DNA from: Hydrolagus colliei
Lineage: Eukaryota
Length of the DNA: 64,000 nucleotides
Assembly (NCBI GenBank): GCA_035084275.1
Contig: CM068742.1
Coordinates: 21,576,001-21,640,000 of the forward strand
Direction of reading: 5' to 3'
Shown: one piece after another, positions 4,170 to 57,704 of the stretch
How the letters are laid out: each line of letters begins with the position of its first letter
Numbering within the stretch: the stretch's first letter is position 1
The notes under the pieces: model-generated
Databases searched by the model: none
Seen by the model: only the letters and a program-made list of their open reading frames with translations
Told to the model about the DNA's origin: nothing
Translations under genes and position numbers: made by a program

Positions 4170-5580
4170 TGAGTCTGTCTGTCTGTCTGTCTGCCTGCCT
4201 GTTTGGGTGGGTGGGTGGGTTTGTGTATGCATGTGTTTGAGTGAGCGTGAATTTTGCATATGTTTGTTTTGTATTTGGTGTGTTTACATGTGTGGGCTTA
4301 TGTAGGTTGGGTGTATTTGTGTGTGTATTAATCGTGAGTACATAGGAATAGGAGTAGACCATCATTCAGCCTTTTAAGCCTGTTCTGCCATTTAATAAGA
4401 TCATGGCTTATCTGAAGCTCAACTAATCCTGACAATTCCTCACTTTCTCCCCATACATCCTGATATCCTGACCTACAAAATATCTATGTATGTGAATGGT
4501 TCTTTGTACACGTGTGTGGTTGGGTTTTTGTTTGTGTGTGTGTGGGGTTGGGGTGGGGCTGGGTGGGGGGGTTGTAGCTGCCGGTGTGTGTGAGATGTGC
4601 GCATTTGCGTGTGTGTATATTTGATGTGTGTGTATGTTTGTTTGGTGTGGGTGTTTGTACATGTGTGAGGTTGGGAGTGTACGTGTATGGGTTGTGTATG
4701 TGTCTGAAACACTGAATGTCCGTTGCCTCGGGATGTCCTCAAGATGTGAAAGGGCTATACACATGTAACTTTGTTGTTGTTGTTGGTGTGTATGGTGTGT
4801 ATATGTGTGCATATGTGGTGTGTGTGCATGGATGTGTGTTTGAGTGTGTGTATTTGTTGTGTGTTGTTTTTGTGTGTGTGTTGGTGTGTAAATGTTTTGT
4901 GTGTCTCTGTATGGTGACACGCCTCCTGTGCAGCGCCTTGGGACGTCCTCCCGACGTGAAAGGCGCTCTATAAATGTAATTTGTTGTTGTTGTTGTTGTC
5001 TGCATATGTTTGTGATGCATGTGTGGTCTTCATATATGTATACATGTGTAGTGTTCAGGCATGCATTTGTGTGTGTTTTTATTCTGTGTCTGTACATCTG
5101 AATATGTCTGTGTGGTGTTAATTTTGTGTGTGTGTATTTCGTGTGTGAATATGTTTGAATGTGTGTTGTGAATGTTTGTGCTGTGTGCCATATGTCAGTG
5201 TGCTTCTGTGCGGTGTACACGTTTGTGTGTCTTTGTTTTGCGTGTATATGTGCGTGCGTTTGTGTGTTTGTATATCCATGTGTATCTATGTGTGGTGTGT
5301 GTTTCTATGTTTGCTGTGCGTGTGTGTATCTATATACAGTATGTCTTTGTGTATGTTTGTTTTGTGTGTGTTTGTGTGTGTATGCATGTGTTTGTGTATG
5401 GGTTATGTGTGTGCCTGTATTTTGTGTGTGTGTGTGTGTGTGTGTGCTGTGTGATTGTGCGTCTCTCTGTTTTTGTGTGTGTGTGTCTCTCTGTCTTTCT
5501 GTGTTTCTGTGTGTGTGCTTGTTTTTGTGTGTGTGTTTGTGTATCAGTCTGTTTTTTGTGTGTTTGTGTGTGTACATATG
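4170..5580. repeat. Long degenerate (GT)n/(GTCT)n array with embedded CR1 and L2 tails
   Basis: About 1.4 kb of imperfect GT repeats. A CR1 tail lies at about 4341-4490 (minus), and L2-type tails ending in (GTT)n lie at about 4720-4785 and 4925-5000. Confidence 0.88.
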
Positions 5581-5639: not shown

Positions 5640-5945
5640 CAAAACAACTGCCCCAGAATAAAGTCTACCGCTGTTCTAGACTGTGTCTCAAAGCGCTTCA
5701 CAGAATATACTGTAAAGTAAATTGACTGTATTTTTGTGGGAGAAATGCGGCAGCAAATTGTGCAGAGCAGTGTCCCCACAAACAGTCATGGATTGAAATG
5801 ACCAATTTATTATTTTTTGAGGGATTATTATTAGGTGTGTGGAGTAAGGAAACTTGCCCAAAGTCTCGCCCTGACCTGCCTGAAATCGAACACAGTCTCA
5901 AGCTTGGAAGGTGAGGGCTCTAACCACTGAGCTACAAGACTCCAC
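5640..5945 (-). mobile_element. tRNA-head Deu-domain SINE
   Basis: Reverse complement carries head TAGCTCAGTGGTTAGAG, core GCTCTGCACAATTTGCTGCCGCATTT and the tail TGTGAAGCGCTTTGAGAC. Confidence 0.8.
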
Positions 5946-5947
5946 TC

Positions 5948-6237
5948 AGTGGACTACAGCTCAGTGGTTAGAGCCCTCGCCTCGCAAGTCAGAGACCTGT
6001 GTTGGATTCTCGGTCAAAGTGAAACCTTAGGCAAGTTTCCTTACTCCACACGCTTCTGTTTACCAACTGTCAATAGGAACCCAGTTGTTAGTGGATTCAC
6101 AGATCACTTTTCCAGTGGTAATCCCTTCAAACTATAATTTTCTGCCATAAAATATACAGTAAATTCACTTGATGCTTTACCCTGTAAAGCGCTTTGAGAC
6201 ACCTGGAAGAGATGATAAGGCCAGGATTATTATTATT
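5948..6237 (+). mobile_element. tRNA-head SINE (internally shortened)
   Basis: Head ctacagctcagtggttagag...gaaaccttaggcaagtttccttactccacacg; tail gtaaagcgctttgagac...ggattattattatt. Confidence 0.78.
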
Positions 6238-6437: not shown

Positions 6438-6608
6438 GCTGGACACTGTTTGTCTGACAGCTGATTGTGCCGAGGATCTGATCTCCACTCTCACTACGAG
6501 CCGCTCACTGACACAGCTGGACCTGGGCGATATTAAACTGGGAGATTCTGGAGTGAAGCAAGTGTGTTAGGCTCTGAGGAACCCAGAGTGTAAAACACAG
6601 ATACAGAG
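6438..6608 (+). pseudogene. Orphan NLR (NLRC3/NLRP-like) leucine-rich-repeat exon with premature stop
   Basis: ctccAG acceptor at 6436-6437, GTAACA donor at 6609. Length is 171 nt with phase 2-2, the RI/NLRP LRR exon size. Reads LDTVCLTADCAEDLISTLTTSRSLTQLDLGDIKLGDSGVKQVC*ALRNPECKTQIQ with TAG at 6568-6570. Confidence 0.85.
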
Positions 6609-10769: not shown

Positions 10770-11606
10770 CTTAAATGGTTAAAAGCGTGGCTGAAAGAGT
10801 GGTACGGGAGGGCAGGGGTTCCATTTTATATGCCATTGGCACCAGTATTGGGGAAAGGGGGAGCTGTTCAATTGGGATGGGCTAAACCTAAACCGGGCTG
10901 GGACTAATGTCCTGGTCAAATCGTTAACTGGTGGGTAGACAGAGCTTTAAACTAATAAGGGCGGGGAGGGAGGGTTGTGGTTAAATGTAAATCAACAAAG
11001 CAAAGACAAGGCTATAAAACAGTGTAGTGACTTGGGGGATCAAGAACAGAGTGTTTTAAGTAGGGACAAAGAGTTCAATAAAGTACATAGGGCAATAATG
11101 AGCAGGGGAGATAGTAAAACGTTAGAATTAAAGGCACTACAACAGTATGCACAAAGCATTCATAACAAGTTAGACAAATTAATGGAACAAATAGAGATAC
11201 CCTGTACATGTAAATGGTTATGATCTACTAGCCATTACTGAGATGTGGTTACAGGGAGACCAAGGTTGGGAGCTAAACATTCCAGGATATTTGACATATA
11301 GGAAAGATAGGTAACATGGAAAATAAGGTGGGGTGGTAGCCCTGCTAATAAGGGATGAGTTAAAAACAGTGGAGAGGAAGGATCTTAAATCAGAAAATCT
11401 GGATGTAGAATCAGTATGGGTGGAGCTAAAAAACAATAAGGGGCAGAAAAAAAATAATAAATTTCTAAAGGGTAAAGGGATTAAGGGATATGGGGATGAA
11501 GCGAGGAGATGGAATTAGATTAGAAGATCAGCCATGATCTTACTGAACGGTGGGGCATGCTCAATGGGCTGAATGTCCTACTCCTGCTCCTAATTCCTAT
11601 GTTCTT
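10770..11606 (+). mobile_element. Internally deleted CR1 (ORF1 end, ORF2 endonuclease start, 3' tail)
   Basis: LKAWLKEWYGRAG.PF (ORF1 esterase end); AQSIHNKLDKL...DLLAITEMWLQGDQGWELNIPGY...GGVALLIRDE...ESVWVEL (APE); then an abrupt switch at about 11455 to the tail gatcagccatgatctt...ctcctgctcctaattcctatgttctt. Confidence 0.8.
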
Positions 11607-12130: not shown

Positions 12131-13314
12131 TAGTTTAAAGACCTCTGAACAGTAGTTACAGTATTGGGCAGAGTATTATTCAGGAAATTAGAGGAGCATC
12201 TAACAATGTAATACAGTCATTATGGGTGATTGACTTGGCCAGTTCAGGCCAACTGTGTGTCCTACATTCCCCCCAACTCCACCATCACTGGCTATACTTT
12301 CAGCTACTATGGCTGACCCTCTGATACTCTCTGTCTCAATGCCCCCATCTTGTCTCCTCTTCCCAGTCTCCTGATCACTCCTGAAGACTTTCCTCTTCGA
12401 TTGTGTTACTGTCACCTTACCTTTCTCCCTGTTTCCAAATCAAACTCTATCATTGTTATGGTCTTAACCAAACTGTGGCTAAAGCTCCCAGGATTATATA
12501 AATATGATGTTTCCTGGAGTAATAGGTCCACTCCTGGTCAATGTCACACTTGGAGTACAACTCTGATCAGCCCACACCTGGAGTACAACAACAACAAAAT
12601 GACACTTGTGTAGCACCTTTCACAAAAGGAGGAGTACTATGTACAGCTTTATCAGGCCACACTTGGACTACTTTAACACTGCTTTGTCTGCACATCCCTT
12701 TAGCCCGTACATCACATTGAATGGTTCTGAAAGTCTGTTTATTTCCACACTTGTGTTTCTGATTTCAGGTTGTGGATAGTCAGGCTCCCAGAGAAGGTGA
12801 GTGACATATTATTGATGTTGGCTGTGAAATCAGTTCACTGACTGTGTGTAACCATGGCCGAGTCCCTACCACTGCTGATAGCCACAGAGTGAGAACTCCA
12901 TAACATTCCCCATCACAGCCTCCAGTGCAGTGCTCCAGCCTCCACCACCATTACTGACAGCCTGTTTCATTGATTAATTCCCCTCTGGTTAACAGACCTC
13001 TTAGCCTGCAGTCTGTCCTGAAATGGCCCTTTACAAAACTCTACATCTGTGTCCGCTTGTTCTCCTGTCATGATACAGCCTGAACTATTGATCTGGGTTT
13101 ATGATCTCAATCCCATCTAAAATTTAATTCAAGTCTATAAAGTCGCCTTCTCTAGAGCGAAGAGCCCCAGCCTGTATAATCAATGCTCCATAATTGGGCC
13201 AATAGAAAAGTGCGGAATGTGACAAATGTGGGTGGTGATTGGTGCTACTGAGGCCCAAACTCCCAAACTCTATGTTTTAACTGTATGGATATACTGTTAA
13301 CTAAATAGAACGAA

Positions 13315-13465
13315 AGGTTATTTCTGGTAGGTCAAGGGTTATGGGGGGAGAAAGCAGGAAATTGGAATTGAAAGGATCAGTCAAGATACAGATTAGCCAT
13401 GATCTAATTAAATGGTGGAGCAGGCTCAAAGGGCTAAATAGCCGCCTCCTGTCGCTATATTCATA
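13315..13465 (+). mobile_element. CR1 3' tail
   Basis: aagggttatggggg...agccatgatctaattaaatggtggagcaggctcaaagggctaaatagcc...cctgtc. Confidence 0.75.
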
Positions 13466-14077
13466 AATATTGGTTTGTTGAAATAAAATCTGTGTGAAGC
13501 ATTTGTGAGGACCAATGGGGGGTGTGGGAGAGGTGCGGGGGGTATAGGTGGGAAACACCACTCCCGCCCACTGACCACATCAACCATCTCCAGTAAGTGT
13601 TTTTTTAATTGTATTTTTACCTTATTTATATATTTATTAAATATTTATTCTAATTTTCAATACCAGTAGTGTTGTTTTTGGTCTATATTTAATATTAGTT
13701 TAAGAAAATTTAGACCAGAAATGTACCGAAGGAATGTAACACATATTTATACAATTAGGGCCTCTGCTCATTTAGGTCATTTAGGTTTCGCTATACAGTA
13801 CGTCGTTTCAATTAAAGTCGCACTTTTCAAGAACACATGTCTGACATTAATTGAGTGGTCCCAGTATAGCAGCACAGTGACCTTAACAACCTGCCAACTG
13901 CTCCCGGTAAACATGAGAAATCTGTCTCTCACATCCAAAGCCAGATAGCACTGAAAACCTTTGGAAATACGTAAATAGATTTGACTCTAAATGAACAGCA
14001 AAAGATCCATAGTGAACAGTACAATAAAAAAAAGCCCCCAAAGTAGACCCCATCCCCAACTCTAAAATTTAGCCCAC

Positions 14078-14610
14078 AACCCTAACGCCAACCCTAACCC
14101 CCAACGTGAACCCGAATTCTAACCCTAACCCCCAACCCTAACTCTAACCCAAACCCCCAATCCAAACCCCAACCCTAAACCCTAACTCTAACCCCCAACC
14201 CTAACCCCCATTCCGAGACCTATTCCCCACAAACTTTTCTCCCCACCCAAAAAAAAGATCTCCTCACTTAACAAAAGAAGCAAACACATTCAGTGCTCCA
14301 GCCGACACCACCATTCCTAACGGCCTGTTTCATTGATTAATTCCCCTCTGGTTAACATATCTCTTAGCCTGCAGCCTGTCCTGAAATGGCCCTTCACAAA
14401 ATTCTACATCTGTGTCTGCTTGTTCTCCTGTCATGATACACCTTGAACTATTGATCTGGGTTTATGTTCTCAATCCCTGAAATTTATAAAACCTAACTCT
14501 AACCCTAATACCAACCCTAACCCTAATTCTAACCCTAATCCAAATCCTAACACTAACCCTAATCCCAACCCTAATTCTAATACCAACCCGAAGACTAAAA
14601 CTAAGCCTAA
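14078..14610 (+). repeat. Interstitial degenerate (CCCTAA)n arrays, 5' group
   Basis: aaccctaacccc... tracts at about 14078-14215 and 14490-14610. Confidence 0.85.
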
Positions 14611-15501
14611 CTCTGGCCTAGTTTGAGAAAAACATTCATGCTGCCAGAAAAAGTGGGATCACAAATTGAGAGAGGGACAAAGGTTGAATGTGAACCTAAG
14701 CCTACATTCCCAGTCCGGGAAGGCAAAGGCAAACACAAACTCCAAAACCCCCCAAAAAAATACATCTCAAAAACCTTCCCTAAAACTAACAAACCTAACT
14801 CAATATTGCTTGAAACATCTAATTAAATTACACCTTAACAAAAAACATGAAACAAAATTCAGGAATAAACACACAAATGCCATCAGATCTAGTTGGGTGG
14901 AATATAATTTAATAAATAAAAACCCGAGTAGAAAGTTTCCACCAACGCCCTAGCCAGGGTAAAGGGATTAACTCTTAAACATTAGAATGAAACAATGGCT
15001 AAAAACACATCATATGGCGAGAGGGCCATTAACGCCATTAACACTAAAGCACATCTTGTGGGCTGTTTTGTCCCATCCACAAGTATAACTGAAACTTCCC
15101 TCCACACAGAAAATTTAAAAATCTCCTTGAAAAAGCCACAGGCATTGGCGAAGCATTGGAGGAGATATTTTTTGCCTTCCAGTTCGGAAATTCCCCCAAA
15201 CCGCAGAGAGTCAATATATGGAGCTGGGATCACCAGACCCCGACCCCTCCAAAGAAAAGCTCTCCCTCCCCTGCTCTTCCTCCTTTTCTTTCTCTCTTTC
15301 TCTCCCTCTCTTTCTCGATTTTTCTCAGCCTTTTTTTTCAGCTCCCCGGGCAGATAAGCATCGGAAACCACAGAGTAGTGGGCTGCGAAACTGGGATCTT
15401 GGGACCCCCAAACAAAGCTCCAGTCAGAGGCCCAATCTCCCGGGGTAAGCCCACTTCTCTTTCCTTTATACACCTTTCCACACCCCACCATCCAAAGCAA
15501 C

Positions 15502-16895
15502 ATGGTGCAGACTATATGCAGGTTGCAAAAATGCAACCGAACGTACCTGAGTGAGGCTGGTGGGCCCCAAAATAACACACACAGGGACACATTTGCAAGG
15601 GCATTCGGGGCCTTTTTTAGACTGATCCAAACATATCATCATTTAATTTTTTTAAAAGGTAATCCCGAAACCCCAAAAGGGATTCCAAACCAAGTAGAAA
15701 AATTGACGGAGTTAGTTAAACCAGCCACACCGTCAGAAGGAACGCTCTGTAAATTGGCCAAAAATGCAGAGATGTGGGCAAAATAGACCCGCAATATCCT
15801 TATCGAACATTATAAGAATAACATAATTGAACTAAATAATGAAATTAGGTCAATTGGACCAACAGACTGAAAAGAGGAGGACTTCACAGTGGCAATCTCC
15901 TGGGCAAGGAAAGCCCTAAAACAAAAATTTTAAATGTCGACCACAGATCGGACAAGGCAGAACATTTTTTAAATTAGCAGAGCTGAAACCCCACAATAAT
16001 GACACCCCAACTAACACTAACTTCAGTAAGTGCACTCCCACCCCACTCCCTGCAGTAAGAACTCTCCCGGCCAGGCACAACTGGAGTTCACTCCAATGTG
16101 TCTGTACACCTGGACCTCGATATTCTCCCGGCATCTCAAGAACAACCACAGTTACTGACGGTGACCGCTGGCACTTGGGATGCAGTGAGACCTGCTAGGA
16201 TAATACAGGCTAAGCCCACACCCCTACTGCAGATTCATCCCCCACACGTAGAACAACGGCAGCCAAGAGAGCGACCCCACGTCCTTCTACACAGCGACTG
16301 TCCCCAGGCTGTACAAAGTAGCAATAGCCCCTTCCCCACAGAGAGACAGTAGCACAGAGTCAGGAACAGAGATGGGAATTTCTCCCCTCCATGCCCAACC
16401 GGGAATTGATAAGAATTTAAATACAGTAACTGTCCACAAAAGTACAGATCGTAAAAATGCAGATGGGATATTAAAACCCTCAAAACCAATCATAATAATT
16501 CGGGACGAAAACCTCACAACAAAACAGGTTGTCCAAATGCACACACACAGGAGCAGGCTTTTCCAGAGGCAAACTTCCATCATGTGGATAAAACGTTAAA
16601 CAAAATCATACCCTGTGAGAAGACCACAAAGGTCTTCATTTTCTCCCTCGGTTTCCACAACTGGGGTCAGCAACCAAAGACTGCCATTAAACAATTGAAG
16701 GCTATGTTAAAAAGGGCCAGGCAAGGTTTCCCCAAAGCAGGAATCCTTGTCACAGAAAGTAATTTTAGCCACAATTTAAACCAAAAAGAAAGGACAACCT
16801 TAGAGGAAGTCAATATTTATTGAAAAAACAAGATTAAAAACAATAACACCCAATGGATTAAATTCCCAGTAATATGGTTAAATGGGAAGCCCCCA
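15502..16895 (+). pseudogene. Degenerate ORF: helical N-terminal domain, P/T-rich linker, SGNH-hydrolase-like domain
   Basis: caacATGG start. FRLIQTYHHL...KLTELVKPATP...NAEMW...LIEHY...VAISWARK, with in-frame stops. Then PIIIIRDENL (GDS block), FPEANFHH (after a frameshift at about 16550), IFSLGFHN, KTAIKQL...FPKAGI...NFS and NMVKW. Confidence 0.65.
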
Positions 16896-16932
16896 AAATA
16901 ATTCTCAAACCCAACTCTAAAATCCAGCCCAC

Positions 16933-17600
16933 AACCCGAACCCGAAACCTAACCCCCAACCCTAACCCTAATCCACAACCGGAACCCTAATCCTAACCCC
17001 TGATGTGAACCCTAACCCTAATGCGAACCCAAACCAAACACAAACCCTAACCCCCATCCCGAAAGCTATCCCCCCAAACCTTTCTCGCACACAAAAAAAA
17101 ATCCTAATTTAAGGAAAGAAGCAAACACATTCATGAGCCCAAACGAAATTTGACAAAACCCACAGGGGGTTATCAGGAAAACACAAGCCATGTGTATCAT
17201 GATCCCTGAATTTTATAAAACCTAACCCCAATCCCAACCCTAACACGAACCCTAACCCTAACCCCCATCCCTAAACCTATCCCCCAAACGTTTCTCTCCC
17301 ACAAAAAAAATCCTTACTTAAGGAAATAAGCAAACACATTCATGAGGCCAAGCGTAATTTGACAAAACTCCAGCACAGGGTGATTATCGGGAAACACAAG
17401 CCATGTGTATTATGATTCTCGAAATTTATAAAACCTAACCCTAACCCGAACCCAAAGGATGCCCTATCCCTAACCATAACCCTAAACCTAACCCGAACCT
17501 AGCAGTAACCCTAAACCTAAGGATGTCCTAACCCTTACCCTAACCCTAAGGATGACCTAACCCTCACCCTTACCCTTACCCTAATGCGAAACCTAACCAA
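16933..17600 (+). repeat. Interstitial degenerate (CCCTAA)n arrays alternating with a ~150-nt unique unit, 3' group
   Basis: Tracts at about 16933-17065, 17220-17277 and 17432-17600, separated by two copies of ctatccccc...aagcaaacacattcatgag...cacaagccatgtgtat...tttataaaacctaacc. Confidence 0.88.
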
Positions 17601-17860
17601 CTCTTTAATATTAGAAGATGTGGACTCCTTGTATTCTTAAATAACAACAGGAATGCTACCATTCCAATAGATCAAAGTAATACTGATGAAAGGTGTACAT
17701 TATTTATAGGTGTGGGCAGGCCAGGATTACTTCATTCAGCATTTAAAAGGTGCTTTCCAGGTAGATAATATTTCAGCCTACTTACTGAACATTCAGTTTG
17801 TTAATAATTGAGGAAGAGATTGTGCACCTGGTCAGTGCTGCCTCAACACAGGGATGAAAC

Positions 17861-18022
17861 ATGGATCTGTCTGTCTTGCCAAATAACAACCATCCTGACC
17901 TATTTATGCAGCTAGATGTAAAAGCATTATCTGTAACTCCCAATTTGGGTCATTTTGGGTTGCCGGGACTATCTGGAGCAGCTCTGAGTGGTCAACATTG
18001 GCACAACCATGTCTATTCAAAG
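17861..18022 (+). CDS. MINAR2: Membrane integral NOTCH2-associated receptor 2, coding exon 1
   Basis: MDLSVLPNNNHPDLFMQLDVKAL...QHWHNHVYSK matches the MINAR2 N-terminus (MDLSVLPNNNHPDKFLQLDVK); AAG|GTAAGT donor, phase 0. Confidence 0.94.
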
Positions 18023-37711: not shown

Positions 37712-37878
37712 TCCTCCCCACATATATCCACCACCACCCACCCACCCCACTCCCTCTCTCCCCTTTCCTCCCTCCTCTCTCTGTCTCTCTCTATCCCTAT
37801 CTCCCCTCTTCCCCTCCCTCTTGTGAGTGTGTGTTTGCCTGGACCAGGCAGGCAGACAGACAGACAGACAGACCCGGT

Positions 37879-38886
37879 ATGGCTGTGAGGTCTCGCCGAC
37901 CATGGCTGAGTGTAGTGCTGGGGCTGGTGTTGGGTTTCACGGCTGCCTCGTGGCTGGTGGTCCCCAGGGTGGTGGAAATCAATGGGAAAAGCAAAAAAAA
38001 CTCCAACCTCTGCTCCTCGCTGTTTAACCGGGCGGGACTCGGCAAAGCCGCGCTGGGCAAGAGCGGCAGCACCAACAGTGTGGGTGGCAGCAGCAGCAGC
38101 AGCAGCCTGGGCTGGCACAAAGACCATCTCCTCTTCAGCAAACTCCGCGAGGAGGAGGAGGAGGAGGAGGAGGGCAGAGGAGAGGAGGAGGAGGAGGAGG
38201 AGGGCGAAGAGGAGGAGGAAGAGGAGAAGGAAAGAGAGAAGAAGGTGGGGAGAGGTAGAGGAGGAGGTGGGCAGGAGCCGAGGAGCCGAGGTGGGGGCAA
38301 TGTGAGAAGCAAACGTTTCCTCTACGTGGGGGTCATGACTGCCAAGAAGTATCTGGACTCTCGGGCGGTGGCTGCCTACAGGACCTGGGCTCCCTCCATC
38401 CCGGGCAAAGTTGAGTTCTTCTCCAGCGAGGGCTCCCAGGAGGTCCCCACCTCCAGCCCCATCCCCCTGGTCTCCCTGGCGGGGGTGGACGACTCCTATC
38501 CTCCCCAGAAGAAGTCCTTCATGATGCTCAAGTACATGCACGACTCGTACCTGGAGCGCTACGAGTGGTTCATGAGGGCCGACGACGACGTCTACATCAA
38601 GGGGGACAAACTGGAAGAGTTCCTGAGGTCCTTGAACAGCAGCCAACCTCTGTACCTGGGGCAGACCGGCCTGGGCACCAGCGAGGAGCTGGGCAAGTTG
38701 GCCTTGGAGCCGGGCGAGAACTTCTGCATGGGGGGTCCCGGGATGATATTCAGCAGAGAGGTCCTGAGGAGGATGGTGCCTCACATCGGCGAGTGCCTGA
38801 GAGAGATGTACACCACACACGAGGACGTGGAGGTGGGCAGGTGTGTCAGGAGGTTCGGGGACACCCAGTGCGTCTGGTCCTATGAG
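37879..38886 (+). CDS. CHSY3: Chondroitin sulfate synthase 3, first coding exon (336 codons; gene continues beyond window)
   Basis: MAVRSRRPWLSVVLGLVLGFTAASWLVVPRV is the CHSY3-type N-terminus. Catalytic region FLYVGVMTAKKYL...GVDDSYPPQKKSFMM...WFMRADDDVYIKGDKLEEFLRSLNSS...HEDVEVGRCVRRFG..CVWSYE; GAG|GTGAGT donor at 38887, phase 0. Downstream of MINAR2 as in human. Confidence 0.96.
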
Positions 38887-39119
38887 GTGAGTGTGAGCTG
38901 GTGCAAAGATAACTGGGTCGTGGGTTGGGGGGGTGGGGGGTGTCGGTGTCTGAGGGAGGACATCACTTTGCAAACCGTGGCTCCCTTAAGTGACTGCACT
39001 TAAAACAGCTCTGGGTGAGGACAGGGTGAGCCATCGACAGCACAAGAATATATATATATATATATATAGATACTGTGTGTATATATACTATATAAATATA
39101 TATATATATGTCACCTGAG

Positions 39120-53493: not shown

Positions 53494-55044
53494 TAATTAC
53501 GTTATATCAGAAAGCAAGCAGTGGATAGTTTCAAGAAATGCAGCGTATACAGTATCAAGGATAATTTAAAAATATAAAAACAATTAGTAGAGGTACCAAT
53601 CAGCCATGATCTAATTAAATGGTAGAACAGGCTTGAAGGGCTGAATGGTCTACTCCTGTTCCTATAGAATATTGCCTCTAAAGTAAATATTGTATATCAT
53701 TAAAGAAAAAAAAAGTGTTAAATAAATCCCAAAAGGCCAAATCTTAACAAGCTTCCAGCTTTAATTTATGCACAGCTAAAAATGATCTCCAGACCGAAAG
53801 GTTATGAATATCCATTCAATCATTTTACTTGCTATCAAAGCTTTCTCCTGATGTGAAAGGCGCTCTATAAATGTAATTATGTTGTTGTTTAGTATTTTAG
53901 GATTACAGAAAGCTAATTTTGGAGACCATGGTATTTTCCAGTACAAGTTTAAATATTCCTGCAAGCTGCTTTATGAGCTTGCTAGTTTTTGTATGAGCAC
54001 TTAGACGCACAAATCAAATTTCCTTTGGCTCAAATTAAATGTTTATAACGTTGGACCGCACCCACTTTATAATTTTAATTTTTGCTGCGGTGATTGGTTT
54101 CAAAATGGAACATGAGAGTGTAATTGCATGACTATTCCTTTGTCCATTTGTTCTTGGCACTGCAATGGGTTGTAAATTTAACCATAGCTGTTTGTGGGAC
54201 TTCAATGGGGTAAATGGCTGATGTGCAAAAAACAGTGGTTGCACATAACAGTGATTCTCAGTAAAGTATTTTGACTCTGTAAAGACATTATAAAAATGGA
54301 AATGTAATTTGTTGTTGTTGTTGTTGTTGTTTTGCTATTTGGCTTTGTAAAGTAGAAATCAAAATGCTGTAATTCCATGTACTAATCGGTGCCTACATTA
54401 AATCCATTGCATTCTTTGCTTCTATTATACTGCCGCAGAGGTGATTTTGTTCATGTCTTTTTATATATGTCTATATATATATATGTGTGTGTATGTGTTG
54501 GGGAAGGGAGGGCAGATGAAGGGAGTTGAGATGAAACGTAAATTACACTAATTATATCTCATCCATCAACCAGCTGGTATATGAAATTTAGAACCAGATT
54601 AATGCATAACTGATGAATTCTAAATTTCCACAGACAAATTGCCTCTATAACATGTTTCATTAAAAGTGAAAAAGAATTGTAGTCCCCATTAGCGTTGCTC
54701 TGACACCATGATGTTTGCAATATATCATTGTCTGTGGACAAAAGTGTTGTTCACATGTTCAGAATTAGAAAATAGTGGTTGCTCAGCAAAGTGACATCTT
54801 TCTTTTTTTACTGTCACTGTAATAGCTAGGAGATATAATAAAGATACATTTATTGTTGTAATCGGATTATAAACCATAATGAATATTGTGCCATGTTAGG
54901 ATACTTAACTCATCTACACTTATTCATTTGTTCATTAGACTTTCATTTTCTCAAGGGAGCGTATGATAACTCTCATTGGGTAGGTTAAAATGCACTGAAG
55001 GAATGCTTGGCCATATTGGACAGCAACACAATTGACTCAATCGG

Positions 55045-55550: not shown

Positions 55551-57704
55551 ATATTTACCGTATCATTCCTCACGGTTTTATTGGCTACATTTGATTCTAG
55601 TACAGAGCAGTTATGACATTATTGTAATAGGATGCGTTAAAAGTTTCAGTTCATTGGGCATAAACCATTGATGTGATACTAATGCTGAGTGTCTGTACAT
55701 TCTTATAGCTGTGTTAGGTGGAGGAGGAGGAGATGGTTTAAGCTTTTTTTTATTTGGAAATGTTACTGGTATTAAGAATATCATGTTCTTCCTTTAATTA
55801 AATGAATATATCCTAATTGTTGCTTCTCCCTCTAATGCTTCCTTCAATTGAGCAAATTTGTCCATCAAGGATAATAATCAAGGATTGTTATAATAATAAT
55901 AATCCATGCATTTGACATAATGTTGTATCATGTCGTTGAAACGTCGCAAAGCGGTTCACAAAATATACTGTAAAATGAATTGAATTTTGTGGGTGATTAT
56001 TCTCTTTGACCACGCTTATGGTCACCTTCCCCTGGTTTGGCCTCGGGCTCCGTCATTGTGAAGCACTTTGAGACACCTATTGGCATGAAGGGCACTATAT
56101 AAATGCAAATTGTTGTTGTTTTAGTCATATTGTGCATCGGGAGTGAGTTTTTTGTTCTGACAAGGGGAATTGTGATAAATTTTCAGACAACACTGGCAAC
56201 TGCAAATATTTATTCCTTTTCGAGTGTCCATCCATCATTCTATCTGTGTCGCTTCATATACCTTCCATTCCATTTCTAGATATTTTACAATGTAATCTTC
56301 TATAAGAATGTGTTCACTGCTTGATATTGGTAGACTATTTTTCCCACAGGGATAAAAATAAGTGGAATATATTAACTTTCCCCCAAGCAAAGTTATTATA
56401 TGGAGAATTTTGCAGTATGCTTTCCATCAGGGCTACATTGCAACATCATTTGAGTTTAGATTCTCATAGATCATATGAAACCTAATAAAGAGATAAATTG
56501 TCTTAAGTGAGAATTATCTTGACTACAAGATACATATGTGCTACACTTTGCAGTAAAATTGTGTGTTTCAAGACATCCCCCCAACATGAAGGCGTTACGT
56601 CAAATTCACGGATAATTGTTATTATGGTTTAACAGGATAAAAAGTAAACAATAGAACAATATTTCCCAATATGCTAAGGTAACAGTGCAAAAAGGCATGA
56701 AAGCTATAAATAGGGTTCAGAAAACAAGATGCAATAAGATTGGTTTAGATGAAGATATATCTTCAGCCCATCTGATCTCATCAATCTAGAAAACCCACTT
56801 ACTACCCTCCCGTTAGAGCATCAAACTTCTTTTTTCAATGAGTCCAGTGTCTTGGCCTCAACCACCTTTTCTGGTAATCTGTTCCAGTTGTCAATTCAGT
56901 ATCTGTTTAGGAACTGCATTGAAAATTTGTTTTTATGGTTAACATTTGTACTGAGGTTTCACACCCATTGGAAATTGCATAAACCTACAATTCAACAATA
57001 ACAACAACTTCGATTTATATTGTACCCTCCATGCCGGACGGCATCTCAGAGCGCTTGAAATTTCCAATAGGATGTTTAGAGTCAGCAGGTGAGGGATCCT
57101 TTGCCTGATCAGTCTGGGCTGAATCTAATTCAAAAAGTCCCAGCATATGAGATGAACATAAGTTTAATTCACACATTTCCTTCAGTGTTATGGTTTTATA
57201 TATTCTTTTGGCGAACAAGTGTTTTTTGCAGTATAATCTATCAAAGTAAAGAATTGAGCTCACTCATTTTCAAACTAAAATCAGAATGTAAATTACAATC
57301 TCCCACATGTCTTACTGTCTAGTTTCCCAAACCTGTCTATCTACTATCTGAAGAAAGTTCTGTTTGTTTCCCTGCTCTTTTCCTCTCCACACACCAAAAG
57401 AGGTTCTTTCATGGTCTTTTTTCATGTTCATTTAGATCTAAAATTCTTTAACTGACAGTGTGCTTTGCATATCAACTCGATCAACTCCCTGGAAGGTTTG
57501 GTTCACCTTACATCTCTTCTACAGAGTAGCACATGTTCCCTTGCCAGTACAAAACTCCATAGATTAATCTACGTTCATGGTTTGGTTCAAAAGAAAGCCT
57601 GAAATTATTTTCATATAAATTTGTTAAATCCAGATTTGGAGTTGTCTCTGTTTTAGACCCAGATGACACATATGTTTTTTCACACATACAATAGACAGAA
57701 TGAG

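Follow-up and report, generated by a model that had tools for sequence, protein, structure and literature searches.

A published layout of esterase-type first open reading frames (ORF1) places a coiled coil and a linker before the esterase (PMC3905857), and such ORF1s have been described for Penelope-like elements (PLEs) (PMC3905857; PMC5408684), including Neptune-like PLEs from fish and molluscs (PMC5408684). Open reading frames (ORFs) of the GDSL/SGNH type are also carried by some Athena families (PMC5408684, PMC8557442). The Athena esterases group with GDSL ORFs of bdelloid long terminal repeat (LTR) elements (ORF3) and of the host, a cluster that does not include esterases from the non-LTR clades L2, CR1 and RTEX (PMC5408684). 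Pseudo-LTRs and non-autonomous PLE derivatives are likewise known (PMC8557442; bioRxiv 10.64898/2026.07.22.740005). Here we report on a block at positions 14032-17600 of a stretch of the Hydrolagus colliei genome (contig CM068742.1, 21,576,001 to 21,640,000). This whole 64-kb stretch is called the window in the following. An earlier note on the window, made without database searches, had proposed the block as its best candidate for an undescribed system. In the light of the reports cited above this claim cannot be upheld and its novelty was overstated. We explain the block as a fossil PLE insertion (probability about 0.85) from a lineage in which ORF1 connects a helical multimerisation domain via a disordered linker to an SGNH esterase.

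With endonuclease-positive esterase-ORF1 PLEs (PMC3905857, PMC5408684, PMC8557442) the element shares the pseudo-LTRs and the ORF1 composed of a helical or coiled-coil region, a linker and an SGNH domain. Its relatives additionally share reverse transcriptase (RT) and the GIY-YIG endonuclease of the CCHH type, a CX2-5CxxC linker (L005, L017), an upstream minimal hammerhead ribozyme and head-to-tail arrays. In contrast, the window copy is dead and lacks both ORF2 and an intact hammerhead, and its 3' region consists of tandem units bearing CCCTAA-like arrays. The parts of the element are the following (TRF, Tandem Repeats Finder):

14032-14611, plus strand: 5' partial copy, or pseudo-LTR (self-blastn, alignment, TRF)
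14291-14486, plus strand: putative templated patch inside the 5' repeat, foreign to the element
14612-15501, plus strand: leader between the 5' repeat and ORF1
15502-16901, plus strand: decayed ORF1 (tblastn, library matches, family alignment)
about 15580-15969, plus strand: helical N-terminal domain of ORF1 (tblastn E 8e-26)
about 15970-16400, plus strand: linker
about 16440-16898, plus strand: SGNH domain (tblastn E 4e-17)
16899-16901, plus strand: ORF1 stop codon
16887-17600, plus strand: 3' terminal repeat region (self-blastn, TRF, alignment)

The plus strand of the block is rich in C and A (GC skew about -0.3, AT skew about +0.2). Self-blastn revealed a direct repeat bracketing the ORF (14032-14292 versus 16887-17133; 74% identity, 266 columns, E 4e-43), a tandem pair downstream (17008-17283 versus 17218-17494; 82%, 283 columns, E 5e-68) and a further match of 77% between 14473-14559 and 17202-17283. 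TRF and a repeat finder concurred on a tandem period of about 211 bp, with approximately 2.5 units extending to about 17600; no inverted repeats were found by the repeat finder. Within the repeat, a segment alpha beginning with AAGCCCCCAAA is followed by a degenerate CCCTAA array, by a segment beta spanning ...CCCCCATCCC... to ...GCAAACACATTCA, by a 68-bp spacer sigma and by a segment gamma, ATCCCTGAAWTTTATAAAACC. On the 3' side, alpha overlaps the end of ORF1 and precedes about 2.5 copies of array, beta, sigma and gamma, and the region terminates in a C-strand telomere-like array. The order on the 5' side is alpha, array, beta, patch, gamma, array, with telomere-like blocks at 14078-14210 and 14492-14611, beta reaching to about 14290, patch sequence filling 14291-14472 and the gamma motif ATCCCTGAAATTTATAAAACC at 14473. 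Hence, a 5'-truncated copy (14032-14611) lies head to tail with the unit 14612-17600, as in a pseudo-LTR. Its left limit falls within the 3' end of ORF1: the copy opens with the final four ORF1 codons and the stop (AAG CCC CCA AAG TAG), and the same 15 nt (AAGCCCCCAAAGTAG) begin the 3' repeat at 16887, at a lysine codon.

The telomere-like parts were detected by TRF as period-6 AACCCT/CCTAAC arrays with 63-71% match. A regular expression scan of the window found eight C-strand blocks, all within 14119-17576 and always on the sense strand of the element, and no G-strand block.

Piecewise translation of ORF1 (15502-16901) revealed at least four in-frame stops and at least two frameshifts within conserved domains. 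Pfam searches with six pieces of the ORF returned noise alone. An 87-aa piece of the SGNH part (16560-16820), scored against 1.84 billion representative proteins at E<=1e-3, matched 125 proteins with a best E of 3e-10 and 43-45% identity. The matches were always located about 45 residues from the C-terminus, in proteins of 230-1100 aa. In tblastn, homologues aligned to 16527-16811 in the SGNH part (E 4e-17) and to 15580-15969 in the N-domain, where E values went down to 8e-26 for protein P0128 and three stops lay inside the match. Proteins found through the SGNH piece thus match the N-domain of the window copy as well. A search seeded with the catshark homologue P0001 gave merely five proteins.

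Alignment of the fragments to the family defined an N-domain signature, FKLIQxxHH...IKPxxPT...NxxxW...ILxxHY...WAxxR, and the C-domain blocks GDSN, DSYPGA, GINN and DxIHWT. The window segments IIIRDENL, FPEANF and LGFHN align with family blocks I (GDSN), II (SYPGA) and III (GINN). In the window copy GDSN has become RDEN, SYPGA AFPEA, GINN GFHN and DxxHW NNTQW, so that catalytic Ser, Asp and His are all replaced and the triad is no longer intact. The C-terminus reads ...WLNGKPPK-stop. Far from the element, window positions 57270-57398 (plus strand) gave a weak tblastn match (E 0.016) to the block-I region of the homologue P0003, which is probably due to chance.

The fold of the family was derived from predicted structures. 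An AlphaFold (AF2) model of the homologue P0002, built on a 45-sequence alignment, reached a mean predicted local distance difference test (pLDDT) score of 88 and more than 93 over the domain. In Foldseek, its best PDB matches were all SGNH hydrolases (E 6e-8, probability 1.0), namely PAF acetylhydrolase Ib alpha and a pneumococcal homologue, TesA/TAP, GDSL lipases and sialate O-acetylesterases. In the model of the catshark protein P0001, residues 8-136 form five helices (pLDDT >90), residues 140-224 are disordered and residues 230-402 make up the alpha/beta domain. The family shows the hallmarks of SGNH/GDSL hydrolases, that is, a flavodoxin-like alpha/beta fold with blocks I (GDS), II (G), III (GxN) and V (DxxH).

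The class of the element follows from its relatives, which were compared in nine genomic contexts of homologues including L002, L004, L005/L009, L010, L016 and L017. RT and/or GIY-YIG are encoded in ORF2 in seven of the nine; ORF2 is cut by the contig end in L002 and L016. The 6.6 kb of L004 hold ORF1 and, 120 bp behind it, an ORF2 of 766 aa that carries GIY-YIG (E 2e-7, above the cut-off) and a weak RVT_1 match. ORF2 overlaps ORF1 in L010-L015, L016 and L017. Where it was called in full (L010-L013 and L017), precomputed marks name DUF8422 and GIY-YIG, mostly together with HTH_animal, and L017 has a weak RVT_1; in L014-L016 it is cut by the contig end and has no domain call. L017 contains two head-to-tail units 6658 bp apart. 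In L001 and L002 an ORF beginning 30 bp after ORF1 opens with ...NLS..L......LLERGLTFIP, which we take to be the N-terminal motif of PLEs. No tyrosine recombinase or AP endonuclease was found in the contexts of the relatives. Since their ORF2s are of the RT/GIY-YIG type instead, the window protein is the ORF1 of endonuclease-positive PLEs, and both of its domains are homologous to the ORF1s of bona fide PLEs (L004, L005/L009, L010, L016 and L017).

The best homologue, P0001, is annotated as 'uncharacterized protein [Scyliorhinus torazame]'. In this catshark the order poly(A), ORF1a, poly(A), ORF1b, ORF2, poly(A), CCCTAA arrays recurs at five places, L005-L008 (four copies 21.5 kb apart on JBKYKK010000836.1) and L009 (CM105025.1). 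ORF1a is intact and encodes 402 aa, ORF1b is 40% identical to it, and ORF2 encodes RT and GIY-YIG and shares 44% identity over 731 aa with ORF2 of L004. The 402-aa ORF with its poly(A) was considered as an RT-less element and rejected: the order ORF1a-ORF1b-ORF2 recurs at two loci, which assigns this ORF to a composite PLE. With its flanking A-tracts, the duplicated ORF1 resembles an ORF1-only retrocopy that was captured.

All four ORF2s examined (L004, L005, L010 and L017) have the internal cysteine pair of GIY-YIG that is typical of PLEs (CCHH). L005 and L017 also have the CX2-5CxxC linker, which L004 and L010 lack; by the motif definitions of PMC8557442, which were used for both features, this linker marks the Neptune/Nematis clades. 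The esterase-type ORF1 is found with linker-bearing (Neptune/Nematis type) and with linker-less (Penelope/Poseidon type) ORF2s and is therefore not confined to one PLE clade.

Several relatives also carry telomere-like arrays, always with the C-strand on the sense strand. In L004 degenerate CCCTAA-like runs follow ORF2, and arrays are present at both ends; the ends of the L004 contig repeat each other (1-85 and 6511-6595, 94%). In L010 an array is located about 1 kb upstream of the hammerhead, and in the young catshark copies L005/L009 near-perfect CCCTAA runs of up to 66 bp are found in tandem units after ORF2. Hence, the arrays of the window are an inherited, though not universal, feature of these PLEs and not a separate satellite. 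We found no description of CCCTAA tandem units in the 3' region of endonuclease-positive PLEs in the literature searched. Their recurrence on the sense strand in the 3' regions of endonuclease-positive, ORF1-bearing PLEs of fish and sharks connects these elements with endonuclease-less PLEs, whose tails are complementary to telomeres, and with the relatedness of PLEs and telomerase.

Minimal hammerhead ribozymes (CUGANGA, stem II, GAAAC) were found upstream of ORF1 in L002 (577-612), L004 (1244-1280), L005/L009 (L005: 5277-5312), L010/L011 (L010: 1170-1205) and L017 (400-436 and 7058-7094). Those of L002, L004 and L010 have a bulged base at stem II, as described for minimal hammerheads of PLEs (PMC4209133). 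The tandem units of the window element contain no intact hammerhead. A possible decayed relic resembling the catshark ribozyme, CAGATAAGCA...CTGCGAAACTGG...GGGACC, is located in the leader at 15345-15406. The best local match of the catshark hammerhead fell at 15374-15406 and was equalled by 6 of 300 dinucleotide shuffles. In L004 and L010 the order is array, approximately 0.7-1.1 kb, hammerhead, ORF1, and the window shows the same order with an array up to 14611, the relic and ORF1 from 15502. Rfam detected no hammerhead in 13500-18000 at E<=10. This negative result carries no weight because Rfam 15 also misses the clear minimal hammerheads of L002 and L004, the two tested, even at E<=1. By eye, a GT..AG intron-like signal was noted at 15436-15496, just 5' of the ORF1 start codon. 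A GTAAG/GTATG donor, a pyrimidine-rich tract and an AG were seen in this way in the window, in L001 (about 124-173) and in L005 (about 5695-5999). The signal may represent a 5'-UTR intron as known from Penelope.

Four PLE ORF2 proteins gave no tblastn match at E<=1 anywhere in the 64 kb, and neither a PLE-type RT nor GIY-YIG is present in the window, in contrast to the ORF2s of the relatives. The anatomy given in the earlier note was thus borne out: the decayed ORF with helical domain, linker and SGNH-like domain and its three blocks, the direct repeat of about 250 nt with telomere-like content and downstream tandem units in a partial-tandem (pseudo-LTR) arrangement, and the absence of RT and GIY-YIG. 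Its assignment of the ORF to PLE ORF1s with an SGNH domain and its exclusion of an ordinary LINE (long interspersed nuclear element) also agree with the contexts of the relatives.

One question is whether ORF2 was already missing from the template of this insertion. The junction between the ORF1 stop and alpha is present in the 5' copy as well and therefore predates the duplication. This favours an ORF2-less template over a later local deletion and suggests the past mobilisation of a PLE RNA that kept ORF1 and lacked ORF2. Sequence upstream of 14032 showed no significant homology to the 3' part of ORF1 (133 of 300 shuffles). If, instead, a full-length PLE had inserted and lost ORF2 by local deletion, the element would never have been mobile in an RT-less form. 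The single known copy, its age and heavy decay, and the rearrangement of the locus by the patch at 14291-14486 speak for such a history. However, the KPPK-stop-to-alpha junction is identical at the 5' partial copy with nothing homologous upstream, so that the endpoint of the deletion would have to coincide exactly with the nucleotide at which the 5' copy is truncated, and no scrap of ORF2 is left. We regard a later deletion as possible but rather unlikely.

Origins outside the PLEs fare worse. In amphibian and fish Ngaro elements (DIRS order) the tyrosine recombinase precedes an SGNH_hydrolase ORF, and the direct repeats are split in the form A1...B1-A2-B2 (PMC9210276); direct repeats together with an SGNH-like ORF are what the window shows. 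Yet a tyrosine recombinase was found in none of the nine homologue contexts, against RT and/or GIY-YIG in seven, the N-terminal helical domain is common to PLE ORF1s, and the window repeats are partially tandem; the 3' part of a Ngaro element therefore has next to no chance of being the source. An equally negligible chance is left to the 5' end of a CR1/L2/RTEX-type LINE truncated before ORF2. Coiled coil, linker and esterase are indeed the published ORF1 layout of ZfL2-1 and CR1-clade LINEs (PMC3905857), but the homologues precede ORF2s of the GIY-YIG and not of the apurinic endonuclease (APE) type, and in the window no ORF2 of this kind follows ORF1. Hammerheads and head-to-tail units are characteristic of PLEs, the truncation of LINEs affects the 5' and not the 3' end, LINEs have no direct terminal repeats, and the ZfL2-1 esterase was not matched in PDB sequence searches. 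It is also highly improbable that an unrelated ORF fragment fell into an independent interstitial telomeric satellite, which the degenerate CCCTAA arrays with their higher-order periods do resemble. Against this, the independent relatives L004, L005/L009 and L010 have arrays of the same orientation in corresponding positions, behind ORF2 and once more upstream of the hammerhead, the repeat begins inside the ORF1 stop region on both sides, and arrays are absent elsewhere in the 64 kb.

Several observations weigh against the interpretation as a fossil PLE with an ORF2-less template. Outside the telomere-like arrays there is no nucleotide similarity to any relative that would point to an autonomous partner. 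No target-site duplication or empty site is definable at the locus. A single dead copy was seen, so that mobilisation in trans and a non-autonomous family keeping ORF1 alone, as considered in the earlier note, are conjectural. The block 14032-17600 contains no intact CUGANGA...GAAA motif, and the relic in the leader is weak: hammerhead queries from L002, L004, L010 and L017 were not significant, leaving one mildly unusual query out of five. By the criterion used, telomere-like arrays are missing from L017, which is the relative most similar in the N-domain, and for this reason the arrays are not universal in the lineage. The Pfam model Lipase_GDSL_2 matched seven of ten homologues below threshold, under the gathering score. 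PDB sequence searches with the 87-aa piece (phmmer) and with a 20-sequence family profile were empty, which is why the fold had to be shown through AF2 and Foldseek. Further copies of the element were found neither by exact protein look-up nor by a word-index search with the 87-aa piece nor by a gapped beta-segment pattern in metagenome contigs; a gamma-motif pattern in these contigs hit four AT-rich chance matches without similarity beyond the seed.

Taken as an ORF2-less PLE, the element has a parallel in HAL1 (half-L1; PMC5753468). In both, the first ORF and the 3' end of the parent are kept and the polymerase ORF is gone, and the ORF2 protein of the parent would be needed in trans. Unlike HAL1, which derives from L1 and is a proven multi-copy family with several origins, the element belongs to the PLEs and is known from one copy; a family of such elements, if there is one, would be the first 'half-PLE'. 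An autonomous relative with the same 3' region would have supplied the RT/endonuclease that reverse-transcribed and inserted the ORF2-less RNA, in analogy to HAL1 and L1. The RNA was possibly coated by the element's own ORF1 protein, which may bind lipid or membrane by analogy with the ZfL2-1 esterase. The C-strand arrays may assist priming by letting the 3' end of the RNA pair with G-rich DNA, as has been suggested for endonuclease-less PLEs. Non-LTR retrozymes and non-autonomous Chlamys elements (bioRxiv 10.64898/2026.07.22.740005, PMC8557442) resemble the element in their origin from PLE terminal regions, their tandem structure and their presumed mobilisation by PLE proteins. In contrast to the window element with its protein ORF, retrozymes do not code for protein and have active hammerheads as their defining feature.

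Like the endonuclease-deficient, telomere-attached Athena and Coprina elements (Terminons), the element has reverse-complement telomeric repeats on the sense strand near its 3' end. However, those elements reside at chromosome ends and have an RT without endonuclease, whereas the window copy is interstitial and its relatives encode GIY-YIG. Attachment to a telomere is not seen here: the 3' C-strand arrays are followed by unique DNA and by a CHSY3-like exon about 20 kb downstream, and no hammerhead adjoins them. It is a quite doubtful speculation that cartilaginous fish genomes harbour a HAL1-like, ORF1-only PLE lineage whose (CCCUAA)n RNA ends prime on G-rich telomeric or interstitial TTAGGG DNA and which parasitises an autonomous Neptune-type partner. 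If true, this would be a vertebrate, endonuclease-era counterpart of the telomere-attaching strategy of Athena and Coprina.

The copy itself is dead, as seen from its stops and frameshifts and the loss of the Ser/Asp/His triad. A repeat divergence of 18-26% together with the broken ORF marks it as an old, inactive insertion. The block is a piece of a dead transposon that shows no sign of a function for the host, and it has little importance for the locus.

The patch at 14291-14486 (196 bp) is a 91% copy of 12928-13126, 1.36 kb upstream, and replaces the 68-bp sigma spacer. It was also considered as a long variant of sigma. Since the similarity to 12928-13126 stops at the microhomologies CA and ATCCC at the patch junctions, this was rejected, and the patch looks like a product of templated repair that is younger than the element.

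An ORF of 390 aa at 37831-39000 (plus strand) contains Fringe-like and CHGN Pfam domains and shares 64-69% identity with the CHSY3 proteins of coelacanth, lungfish, sturgeon, teleosts and birds. Going by this similarity, it probably represents the first exon of CHSY3 in the host. The evenness of these distances, taken with a catshark protein as the best homologue of ORF1, hints at a host among the cartilaginous fishes. A short interspersed repeat (...GCAGGCTCAAAGGGCTAAATAGCC...) at 13364-13459 occurs five times in the window with 78-85% identity (further copies at 1728-1789 and 4364-4439, both on the minus strand, 11525-11586 and 53583-53666) and is probably a SINE (short interspersed nuclear element) or a LINE tail common in the host genome.

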